From the NCBI GenBank assembly GCA_009103225.1, contig RHPI01000193.1, positions 62,001 through 126,000 on the forward strand: a DNA stretch of 64,000 nt. Direction: 5' to 3'. Both the position numbers and the translations under genes were made by a program. The notes under the pieces were generated by a model. The model did not search any database. It was not told the origin of the DNA and was given only the letters and a program-made list of their open reading frames with translations. Below, piece by piece: positions 45,234 to 49,716 of this stretch. The stretch comes from Chlorokybus atmophyticus. Taxonomy: Eukaryota; Plantae; Mesostigma and Chlorokybus algae. Position 1 is the first letter of the stretch. Every line of letters begins with the position of its first letter.

Positions 45234-46895
45234 GGCGCCATGAGTCACGCACCATTCCGTGGCAGGAACTACCGCTGACTCTGGCGGCCCATTCTATATG
45301 CACATACAGCTTTATATGACATGGTCCATCCATTACGATGACTCAAGTTAATGAGCCCAAGGCACGCCCGTTACGCGCTTACTATATCGTAAGCTACGCG
45401 TAGCCGTCGCTTCACTGATGTGCACGTGTACCGCAGCGGTCGGAGGGTAGCGCCTACGAACCGTATGCGCTGTAACACGACACAGCGTCGGTCAACTAAC
45501 GACCAGCCAACTGCTGCTCTGAACCGGCTCTGTTGGGTCCATGTACCGGTCTGCGGCATCATGTTACACGCGTTGTGGGTAGGAGCGTTAAGAGCTGCTG
45601 CCGGACAAGAGCCGGCTGGCAGTTCCGTCGTCAGGGTCTTCCCGAAGGCGACAGGCCGCAAAGTGACGCGACAGTTGCCATGATGGCAAACGGAGACGGG
45701 ATGGTAGCGGTCTGACACGGCGACAACGTATATCCAAGGACGCCGTTGCGACGGACATGGGGGAAGAGACGCGACACAGCAGAAATGGATGCTTCTTGCC
45801 AGTTGCTGCTAACATGACCGACACGTGTACCAGGGGCGCATTCGTCAACGGCCGAGAATGAATTTCGAAAGCGGGCACGTCACCGGTAAGCCTACCGTCA
45901 GCCTGCGGCAGGTCGTACTCATATAGGGATCGCAGCATCATTGTCCGATCTCCGTGCAGTGCCACCTTGCGCTTGGCTCTCAACCACCGCACGATACGGC
46001 CGTTGCACGAGACTATGCTGCGCTGTCATACCTTTGCTCCGCAGACGTCACCGTCTGTAATTAAAACGCGGTGACTGCCAACCTACCTCGAAGCTATCAA
46101 CCCTATTAATGAAGGCAGGAGACAGCGCAGCACACAGGCGGTCAAAGGGCGCGGGGAGACCGGTTCGAGGGGTGATATGATCTGGATCCGCGTCGCTCAG
46201 CGCGCCGGCGCATGACCGGGGGTCAGACCTGTGCCGTGACCCCCTCGTGATTTACAAACTAATTGAAAACCTGGGACGTACCAAATCGCCGCGTATCGCG
46301 TGGGATTGCGTGCCGTGGGGCTAAGCTACCGGTGCGGTAGCTCTGTCATTAGGTTCATGAAAGGCATAAGGTCACCCTACCACGCCCTTTTCTGCGAGCC
46401 CCGAACTGAGCGTTTTCGGCACATGATAACGACGAGTCGTTATTGACGGACAGCAGCAAAAAGGCGCTGTGTTGTGTCACAAGTTTTGCCTGTGGCGTGT
46501 GTGGCAACACTTCAAAGTTTGTGTGTGTTGTGCGCAGTGAGGCGGTTGTGTTGTGTTGTGTTGTGTTCCCCAGGGCTTACTGGGCGTGGCGGCGGTGGCT
46601 GTGTCGTGGTCGTCGTCGTTCGCGTGAATAGGGCGGTTTGAGGGAGAGCTGTTGCAGGGGTTAGCTTGCGCACCAGCAGCAGGCTAGCACAGGCCTGGCA
46701 GGCTGAGGGCGGGGAGAGGAGTGTGCTTGCTAGTCGTTGGTGTGGGTGTAGTCGTTGACGTTGAGCTGCTGCTGGGTCTAGGCGGCGGCTGAGGTGAGGT
46801 TAGGGGGATTGTGGTCGAGGTGGTGGAGGTGAGAGGCGAGGTGCAGTAGCTAGGTCAAGGGCGGAGAGTAAGGGAGTGATTGGGTGCCGTGTGTG

Positions 46896-48218
46896 ATGTG
46901 GAGTCAGCAGCAGGCGGCGGCGGCGGCAGCGGCGGCGGCGGTGGTCCAGCAGCATCAGCAGCTCCAGCAGCAGCTCAAGGCGGCGGCGGCAGCTCACCAG
47001 CAACACCAGCAGCAACAACAACAACACCAGCATCAGCAGCAAGTGCATGAGATGGACGGCAGCGCCTCCCAGCTCACCTGCAGCAAGTGCTTGACCGTGC
47101 TGGTCTACCCCAGAGGCGCCAGCAACGTCCTCTGCGTCCTCTGCAACACCATCACGCCTGTCCCCACCGCCGCCTCCGCAGCCGCAGCAGCCGCCTCGGC
47201 CTTCACGCAGCCCTCCCGCCCAGTCGCCAGCTACGCCGGCGGCAGCAATGGCGCCGACAGCCAGGCCGCCGCCGCATCCTCCGGCCTGGTCAAGCCTCTA
47301 GCAGAGAAAAAGTCCATGCGCAGCCCAGGGAGCCCACTGGACCTGGACTTGTCTCTTCCCAAGCCTGCAGCTCCCTCGAACTCAGCAGCAACGCACACAG
47401 CCTTCCAGCCGCCTCATTCTTCTGCCGCCGCCCTCGCACCCAAACGCACCCGAAGCCATGACTCCTCAGACAAGTCCGACTCGGATAAGGACTCTGACCC
47501 CAATGGCACTGGTGAGTGTGTGTATGAGTAGATGTTTGTGTTAGTGTGGAATGCAATTGTTGCATTGCATATGATCATTGGTTGCGCGTGCTTGCCTAAA
47601 GAGTAACAGCAGTAGTAGTAGTAGTCCAATGTGCACGCGTGTGGTTTACCTCAGTAACGTTTCGTTTGAAGCCCTGTTACAGTTTGTTATGCCTTGTCTG
47701 GGCCAGTTCATGCTAGTTGACTGCAGCATGCAAAACATGGAAACCAGTAGGCCAAGGCAGATTGTGTATGCAGTGGAAGTCTTGTCAGTCAAGCTTGGCA
47801 AATTCAATGCTTGTTTACTTGTATCATTATCCTTCCTGCACAATACCTGTTGCTCTTATTTTGATTGGGTGTGTCATGTGTGCAATGCTGACCTTGCCAT
47901 ATGGTGTGTTCAGCGGATGTGTCGGCATATGAAAGGATGAAACGTCGTCGACGTGAGACAGCCAAGCGTTCCCGCGCTCGCAAGGCTGCATACATGCGTG
48001 CATTGGAAATTGAAAACGCTGCTTTGCGCCAGGAGCATGCCGCCATGCGGGCCGAACTCGCTCGCCTCAAGAAGCAGTACGAGTCCAACATCAATAATAA
48101 CAGCAACAGCAACAACAACAACTCCCCTCCCACGCTAACACTCACGACACAACAACCTGCCGCGCAAGACGCCTCGCCGCCACCTCCGCAGTCGCAAACC
48201 ACAAGCACTCCAAGCTGA
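46896..48218 (+). CDS. Transcription factor: polyQ/A N-terminus + LSD1-type zinc finger + EAR motif + bZIP (306 aa)
   Basis: Exon 1 46896-47511 has QLTCSKCLTVLVYPRGASNVLCVLCNTIT (zf-LSD1, CxxC-x-L-x-YPxGAxxVxCxxC) and LDLDLSL. Phase-1 intron 47512-47913 (GTGAGT...GCTGAC...TTCAG). Exon 2 47914-48218 has RRRRETAKRSRARKAAYMRALEIENAALRQEHAAMRAELARL. Confidence 0.88.
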
Positions 48219-49716
48219 CGATGTGCGCGTGTGCGTGCGACACGGCGTGTACACTCGCTTCCCACATACACACTCTCTCCCTCCCGCGCGCAGCCATGAG
48301 TATCATATTAGTGTTAGCAGCAGCTTGGTTTCTAGTTCTTTTTCTCTCAGTTAGGAAAGGCTCAGCGTAGTTGCTCTCTTGCTCGCTTGGTTGATTTCAT
48401 CGGAGAATTGCTTGGAGGTATTAAAGTTAGGGTGTGACTTTTACTACTCGACTTGTACATTGCTCGCTTTCATAAGAAGATTTTTGGGCTTGTCACCTTG
48501 TGTCTGGGGGACTCACTTGCATGCTTGTGTGCTTGTCCGTTGCAAACCAACTGGTGTTTGAGTCATTTTCGCTGTGTCATACAGTACAACACTGCAAGAT
48601 GTTGTCATTGTGCCCGCAAGCGTGCGGGGAGTATGTGCTGTCTGCGCGCAAGGCTGAGCCAAACTCTCTGTGCCTGTCTTTGAAGTTGTGAGGTCAACAC
48701 ATGTGTTCTGAGTTAATATCAGTAGGTAGGTGCATGATCATGTTGTGTGGGTGCACCCATATTACAGGCGTCCATGCACACATGTGCACCTGCGCACACA
48801 TACCATGGCAATGCCCTCCGCCACAGATGATATGTGCACGTGCGCGCGCAATGCAAGACGGGTACGTATGCACCCACGCACGCACGCATGCCTGTGTCAT
48901 ATGCAGCACATTTATTGTACATGTGGTACATTTCGTTTGCTGGTAGGTGTTCATGCTGCATGCCTGGTAGCCCCCTGCTCTATGCTACGTAAGGTAGCGT
49001 CATAGCTGTGAGCGTGTGTACAAAAGATGAAGGCATGTGTGCACATTGCATGTGCATGTGTACAGGACACATGACGTGCTATTGGTGGTGGGGTTGGGCG
49101 CTCACGCTACCATGCAGCTGTGCGTACCAGCTTGAGTGTATCTCTGTGTGTGCATCTGAGCATACGTGCGTGTGCGTGTGGATGTGGGTGGGTGTGAGTA
49201 TGAGTGCGCATGAGTACACGGGAGTATGTAATACACGTGTGACACTTGTGCCAAGCCCAGTCATGTCGCAAACCAACTATGCGTGCAAGGCTTATTTTTT
49301 TTTCCCAAATGTTTCTCAATCAAAGAAAGAATCGTCTACATACAGCACGAAAGGGGTCTGTCTGTCTGTCTCCCTATAGGAGAGGGCAATGGTAGGCTCT
49401 ACAGCAGCAGATAAGCAAAGAATGCACTATGGTACAAATGTGTCCCCCCCCCCTCCCCAAACCTATCCAACAAAACTTGCTCCCAATAGGCTCAGCTGGC
49501 ACCCTAAAGCCACACAACTGAACCCACATTCACTAAACACAAGCGCTACCTACCACCCCTTGGCACCTCCTTCACACGTATCATCATAAGGGGAGAGGAG
49601 CTTCTTCTCGCTGCACACAATAGACACAAACACACACTGCGCTGTACTAGACTGTAATGGTGGTCTTCACTCTATCTCCATCTTTCACACTTGCTGTTGC
49701 TGTTGTTGTTGTGGAT

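Follow-up and report, generated by a model that had tools for sequence, protein, structure and literature searches.

A Chlorokybus gene that joins an LSD1-type zinc finger, an LxLxL motif and an arginine-type bZIP domain in one polypeptide

The DNA analysed here, termed the window, is a stretch of 64,000 nucleotides from the streptophyte alga Chlorokybus atmophyticus (contig RHPI01000193.1, positions 62,001 to 126,000). Its forward strand carries a two-exon gene whose predicted product has an LSD1-type zinc finger near the amino terminal end, a linker with the motif LDLDLSL and a C-terminal bZIP domain. A first-pass annotation had placed a single zf-LSD1 finger, this motif and the bZIP at the locus, joined in frame by one canonical intron; the coordinates and all three motifs proved correct. 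The features, in positions of the window, are as follows.

46631..46895, + strand: 5′ untranslated leader, minimum extent, with no ATG inside (RNA-type contig of run X1 on 46631-46899)
46896..47511, + strand: coding part of exon 1, amino acids 1-205 and the first base of codon 206 (sequence and script translation; X1 and X3 contigs over 47050-47510)
46896..47048, + strand: Gln/Ala/His-rich low-complexity N-terminus, amino acids 1-51, encoded by CAG/CAA/GCG repeats (translation)
47079..47153, + strand: single zf-LSD1 zinc finger, amino acids 62-86 (Pfam PF06943, TIGR01053)
47337..47357, + strand: LDLDLSL, an EAR-type LxLxL motif, amino acids 148-154, in the block SPxSPLxLxLS (regex)
47442..47498, + strand: KRTR basic patch, amino acids 183-186, then the Ser/Asp cluster SHDSSDKSDSDKDSD, amino acids 187-201 (sequence only)
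47512..47913, + strand: phase-1 intron of 402 nt with GT..AG ends (joint skipping 402 nt in X1, X2 and X3)
47914..48218, + strand: coding part of exon 2, amino acids 206-306 and the TGA stop (sequence, contigs, script translation)
47931..48086, + strand: bZIP domain, amino acids 212-263, with basic region KRRRRETAKRSRARK (Pfam bZIP_1; HMMER alignments to NFIL3, GCN4 and CREB)
47949..47951, + strand: codon of Arg218, at the site of the invariant bZIP Asn (GCN4 Asn235) (alignments to GCN4 and NFIL3)
48219..48454, + strand: 3′ untranslated region, minimum extent (contigs end at 48450 in X1 and at 48454 in X2)

The start ATG lies at 46896, downstream of an in-frame stop (TAA, 46869-71), and the transcribed leader is free of upstream ATGs. 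The exon 1 frame is open to 47511 (phase 1), where the donor GTGAGT follows; the acceptor TTCAG ends at 47913, and the frame continues in phase from 47914, the first base of exon 2, to the TGA at 48216-18. Joined by script, the exons form a spliced coding sequence of 921 nt that encodes 306 amino acids. The presumed promoter displays a GT-rich microsatellite-like stretch (GTTGT/GTGTT repeats) at 46470-46600, shortly before the first base with transcript coverage (46631).

The locus is present in three of five public runs (X1, X2 and X3, from two studies), and these three were aligned to window positions 46300-49000, with 46900-47049 and 48086-48131 skipped as repeats. The run material consists of assembled contigs, not raw reads, and the run type 'RNA' is a guess; the runs are argued to be RNA because the intron is removed and flanking DNA is absent. 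All three display one splice joint, 47511|47914, which skips 402 nt with GT..AG ends, and none of them has any coverage within the intron or beyond ∼46631-48454. One X1 contig of 1052 nt, 100% identical to the window, spans 47050-47510 and then 47913-48450. This contig covers both exons, so that a single spliced molecule carries the coding parts of finger and bZIP. The proposal that a single transcript crosses 47511/47914 is thereby confirmed, with the exact joint present in three runs and two studies. Two separate genes, the alternative that had been considered, are ruled out by the spliced contigs.

Run X3 represents a relative that is 90-95% identical to the window gene and has the same splice joint. 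Cryptic Chlorokybus species that diverged up to about 76 Ma have been described, and their transcriptomes exist (PMC8611356); runs X2 and X3, both from 2021 and under one organism label, fit these transcriptomes. All four indels in the X3 relative are multiples of three. Compared with the window gene, 35 substitutions are listed, of which 29 are synonymous; the other six lie in four changed codons, and all four of these codons fall in the linker. The sole change in the zf-LSD1 finger is synonymous, as is the only kind of change seen in the LxLxL codons and the change of the Arg218 codon from CGA to CGT. Exon 2 has 13 synonymous substitutions and no non-synonymous one. Judged from this substitution pattern, the gene for the LSD1-finger–bZIP protein is under purifying selection.

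The exon products were scanned separately against profiles. The zf-LSD1 finger, amino acids 62-86, has the sequence CSKCLTVLVYPRGASNVLCVLCNTIT and scores 33.6 bits with Pfam PF06943 (cut-off 20.2). Independent support is found in the NCBIfam profile of the LSD1 finger, TIGR01053, with 35.2 bits against a cut-off of 15.5. Within the finger, CSKCLTVLVYPRGASNVLCVLC at amino acids 62-83 displays the CxxCRxxLMYxxGASxVxCxxC-type C2C2 pattern that places it in the zf-LSD1 class. A six-frame and regex scan of the whole window detected no second finger and no second bZIP. The PDB holds no zf-LSD1 relative detectable by sequence, and the finger has only weak matches there, to generic zinc ribbons such as eS27. 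To our knowledge, zf-LSD1 has no documented DNA-binding activity. The finger type, with the consensus CxxCxxxLxYPxGAxxVxCxxC, is restricted to Viridiplantae and represents a protein-interaction module (PMC12929109, PMC9795235). Through fingers of this type LSD1 contacts catalases, metacaspase 1 and other proteins, in part redox-dependently (PMC9795235, PMC9777155), and some land-plant type-I metacaspases carry one in their N-terminal prodomain (PMC9626678).

The bZIP domain passes its profile (bZIP_1, PF00170, amino acids 212-263) marginally, with 28.5 bits against a gathering score of 27.6, or 0.9 bits over. The bZIP assignment of the first-pass annotation therefore stands, with the refinement that the basic region is non-canonical. 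In HMMER alignments to GCN4, NFIL3 and CREB, Arg218 aligns to the invariant Asn (GCN4 Asn235). The classical signature N-x7-R/K with its invariant Asn is thus not present, while the RSRARK downstream of this site is intact. The zipper has L236, L243, M250 and L257 at d positions and Asn240 at an a position, and comprises four heptads. A heptad leucine zipper follows the basic region on one helix, as indicated by these heptads and by the helix in the AF2 model of a paralogue described below.

The replacement of Asn by Arg is shared by every relative that was aligned. A phmmer search with the 61-amino-acid bZIP piece against 1.84 billion representatives yielded 73 matches at E<=1e-3. The matches of <450 amino acids with a single basic-region match (n=53), together with the window protein, formed a set of 54 sequences in which the register could be read. 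Arg is present at the invariant-Asn position in 54/54 of them, the window protein counted, and the Arg-type sequences have the common signature ER[IV]K.[KR]RRESAQRSR.RK..Y...LE.EN..L. This uniformity argues for a conserved functional variant and not a decaying domain. A decayed bZIP is also unlikely in view of the exon 2 substitutions in the X3 relative, 13 to 0 in favour of synonymous change. Two of the relatives, P0018 and P0008 (loci L001-L006), come from compact contigs that appear free of introns; SelR lies upstream in both, and Las1 downstream of P0018 only (in L001-L003).

The best phmmer match, P0001, is a protein of 233 amino acids that is 74% identical over the bZIP piece (E 4e-14). 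It is also from Chlorokybus atmophyticus (jgi/Chlat1/8674/Chrsp88S08056; EukProt EP00898_P008525) and displays the same finger–LxLxL–bZIP order as the window protein. Its zf-LSD1 finger, at amino acids 31-55, scores 35.8 bits and closely matches that of the window protein. Around the finger, 28 of 41 residues are identical, and an 18-residue identical run, TVLVYPRGASNVLCVLCNT, is shared with the region encoded at 47061-47189. Also in common are the Arg at the Asn site, the core AYERMKRRRRETAxRSRARKAAYMRALEIENA, an MW start and an ASPPPP tail. Overall, the two proteins are only ∼51% identical, with many indels, and P0001 is without most of the poly-Gln/Ala N-terminal stretch and without the Ser/Asp cluster. 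As this divergence is far above that between Chlorokybus species, P0001 represents a paralogue and not the same gene. The poly-Gln/Ala/His N-terminus of the window protein and its Asn/Ser tract after the zipper, which is encoded by AAC/AGC repeats at 48086-48131, are both missing in the paralogue and are therefore probably recent expansions.

In the AF2 model of P0001, the finger is a small beta-stranded unit with a pLDDT of about 75. The linker, amino acids 62-113, is disordered and holds the LxLxL motif, with a pLDDT below 50 in the motif segment. A single long helix follows at amino acids 120-195, with a pLDDT above 90 across the bZIP.

The linker motif reads LDLDL at amino acids 148-152 of the window protein (LDLDLSL at 148-154) and LSLEL in the paralogue, in both cases within SPxSPLxLxLS; the paralogue block SPTSPLSLELSI corresponds to SPGSPLDLDLSL of the window protein. 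This block is the only well-conserved one in a linker that has otherwise diverged between the two paralogues. In shuffled linkers, an LxLxL arises by chance in 1.4% of cases for the window protein and in 2.9% for the paralogue. A chance origin of the motif is unlikely because it is conserved in the paralogue. Functional short linear motifs commonly appear as a conserved block amid a diverged, disordered linker. The EAR pattern, LxLxL or DLNxxP in a disordered region, is present in sequence, with the disorder taken from the paralogue model. Next to the bZIP, a different linker feature is found in the window protein only: the Ser/Asp cluster SHDSSDKSDSDKDSD (47454-47498) comes directly after KRTR and before the bZIP, and is absent from the paralogue. 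KRTR and the cluster might represent a nuclear localisation element and an acidic CK2-type phospho-cluster.

A partner for the LxLxL motif is at hand in the same alga. C. atmophyticus has a TOPLESS (TPL) homologue in which the EAR-binding residues and groove are conserved (PMC6797205). An ARF of this alga binds the N-terminal domain of Arabidopsis TPL via EAR-like sites, and the binding is lost in the F74A mutant of the groove (PMC6797205). By its sequence, the LxLxL motif of the window protein is predicted to bind TPL as well. The repression motif of the first-pass annotation is thus upheld as a conserved sequence with a suitable TPL in Chlorokybus, and repression itself is treated here as a putative function.

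The distribution of the architecture was followed by several routes. Among the phmmer relatives of the bZIP piece, a zf-LSD1 finger is found in P0001 only. Word-index protein searches with exon 1 gave no match and missed even P0001, so that these blanks carry little weight; the same kind of search with P0001 returned P0001 itself only. Metagenome scans with the finger alignment and with the bZIP alignment yielded no confirmed relative, and no large cluster with both zf-LSD1 and bZIP is present in the ESM Atlas. The exhaustive search used the bZIP piece alone, and it would therefore miss fusions with a more distant bZIP. As far as searched, the combination of zf-LSD1, LxLxL and bZIP is seen in Chlorokybus alone and appears lineage-restricted within this scope.

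The paralogue bears on how such fusions come to be overlooked. Its bZIP scores 22.7 bits, below the Pfam cut-off of 27.6, and the stored annotation of P0001 consists of PF06943 only, with no descriptive name. Architecture searches by domain accession consequently miss the fusion. The searchable literature has no description of a zf-LSD1 or LSD1 plus bZIP architecture in algae, and none was found in other organisms; in the first-pass annotation, too, the architecture was not known from land plants. One paralogue is already a public gene model, so that novelty lies not in the sequence but, it appears, in recognising the architecture. Among bZIP and zf-LSD1 proteins, the fusion represents a new combination of domains.

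The reading favoured here, held with about even confidence, is that this expressed two-exon nuclear gene encodes a dimeric, sequence-specific bZIP repressor of the nucleus, with a TOPLESS-recruiting linker and with the finger as a docking module. It is supported by the splice joint, the domain scores, the synonymous bias, the layout of the paralogue, the AF2 model and the zipper heptads. DNA binding by the window protein, its TPL-dependent repression and the part played by its finger are inferences. The C-terminal Arg-type bZIP would form dimers and recognise DNA, with a half-site that probably differs from the classic ACGT/TGAC cores. The protein would act as a repressor through the LxLxL of its disordered linker, which would fit into the EAR groove of the algal TOPLESS. 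The N-terminal zf-LSD1 would be a docking site for other proteins, the role that such fingers have in LSD1 and in the type-I metacaspase prodomain, and may tie the activity or the nuclear access of the factor to LSD1- or metacaspase-type partners, possibly in a redox-dependent manner. Several points count against the repressor reading. The bZIP of the paralogue is below the Pfam cut-off and that of the window protein barely above it, and the loss of Asn could impair or redirect DNA binding. The LxLxL motif is short, and the finger could serve another role. In addition, a Gln-rich N-terminus is more typical of activators.

It is somewhat unlikely that the gene represents a lineage-specific domain shuffle without LSD1 biology, in which the zinc ribbon would be an accessory to nucleic-acid binding or oligomerisation, LxLxLx[LI] a nuclear export signal or other docking site, and the Gln-rich N-terminus an activator. 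Conservation extends to the fourth hydrophobic position of the motif, which is L or I depending on the paralogue, and this, the Gln-rich N-terminus and the resemblance of the finger to generic zinc ribbons (eS27) in its weak PDB matches are all consistent with such a shuffle. However, the paralogue does not share the poly-Gln tract, an alternating LxLxL in a disordered linker generally fits extended EAR binding better than the classic spacing of an export signal, and zf-LSD1 is not known to bind DNA. An artefact, in which faulty assembly or a read-through contig would have fused two adjacent genes or a pseudogene, is hardly credible: the guessed RNA type of the runs and their nature as assembled contigs instead of raw reads leave some room for it, but the identical canonical in-frame joint recurs in three runs and two studies, the diverged relative included, the intron interior is without any contig, the open reading frame is uninterrupted with both exons strongly biased to synonymous change, and a paralogue has the same architecture.

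A further alternative follows from the first-pass annotation, which saw in the fusion a Rosetta stone for LSD1 and bZIP10 and an ancestral or convergent switch. Here the finger would bind its own or a partner's bZIP and mask the basic region or a nuclear localisation signal until redox or stress release, and the fusion would record, or predate, the LSD1-bZIP10 module. The background given for this is accurate: Arabidopsis LSD1 binds bZIP10 and blocks its nuclear entry (review PMC9777155), and LSD1 interactions are redox-dependent and need the fingers (PMC9795235). The finger and the bZIP are also the two best-conserved blocks between the paralogues, and both paralogues and a sibling lineage have retained the fusion. 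The description of both partners in one chain is, nonetheless, valid at the level of domain families and not beyond it, as there is one finger against the three of LSD1 and the bZIP is Arg-type with four heptads. Given the Arg-type subfamily, the short four-heptad zipper and the other aligned relatives, which are fingerless, nothing shows kinship with group C and bZIP10. The term 'ancestral' is unsupported, because the fusion is seen only in Chlorokybus. We consider this alternative unlikely. A specific form of it, in which the finger binds its own or the dimer partner's bZIP and redox-gates nuclear entry or DNA binding as a cis version of the land-plant LSD1-bZIP10 switch, is a long shot. If true, it would mean that the finger-bZIP contact predates land plants, and it would identify the bZIP surface that is recognised by LSD1.

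LSD1 is a central hub in the signalling of cell death and oxidative stress in plants, with a mechanism that is poorly understood, and its one known transcription-factor link is the cytosolic retention of bZIP10. The Chlorokybus gene, from the streptophyte lineage farthest from land plants, provides a natural LSD1-finger–bZIP fusion that is expressed, duplicated and under selection. As a compact system, it lends itself to three questions: whether an LSD1-type finger can recognise a bZIP domain directly, whether bZIPs of early streptophytes already worked with EAR/TOPLESS repression, and which DNA is read by an Arg-for-Asn basic region. There is also a practical lesson, in that a sub-threshold bZIP in the paralogue hides the family from searches by domain accession.

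Among known proteins, the bZIP domain is closest to the small Arg-type bZIPs of unnamed transcriptome and metagenome assemblies (e.g. P0007-P0072). These are 45-65% identical in the domain and have short zippers and Arg for Asn, but they carry no zf-LSD1; only four have an LxLxL match, and in none is it in a conserved block. Replacement of the invariant Asn is likewise known from conserved, expanded bZIP classes of oomycetes, where Cys, Arg, Val and other residues are found in its place and a changed DNA specificity has been proposed (PMC4046829). The oomycete proteins belong to a different eukaryotic supergroup and are without zf-LSD1, and they serve here as a precedent for such a replacement. 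Group C bZIPs have the canonical Asn and extended zippers of up to nine heptads, whereas in the window protein the site is Arg218 and the zipper stops after four heptads, with an Asn/Ser-rich tail behind it; on these features it falls outside the bZIP10-like group. With Arabidopsis bZIP10 itself, a member of group C, it has the bZIP domain in common, and the nuclear entry of bZIP10 is linked to an LSD1-type finger protein (PMC9777155).

The finger leads to two further comparisons. The LSD1/LOL proteins of Arabidopsis (the LSD family) have the same zf-LSD1 finger type. They contain one to three fingers and no DNA-binding domain, whereas the window protein has one finger and a bZIP. The likeness is at the level of the finger, and with its single finger followed by a bZIP the protein is not a member of the LSD family. 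The metacaspase prodomain is the only other well-known zf-LSD1 fusion that we are aware of. Type-I metacaspases such as AtMC1 likewise have one N-terminal LSD1-type finger before an unrelated effector domain, which is a caspase-like protease there and a transcription factor in the window protein, and the finger region of the metacaspase mediates binding to LSD1 (PMC9626678, PMC9777155). With its finger in the prodomain, the metacaspase provides the closest architectural analogy to the Chlorokybus protein: an LSD1-type finger placed before an effector, with a bZIP replacing the protease.
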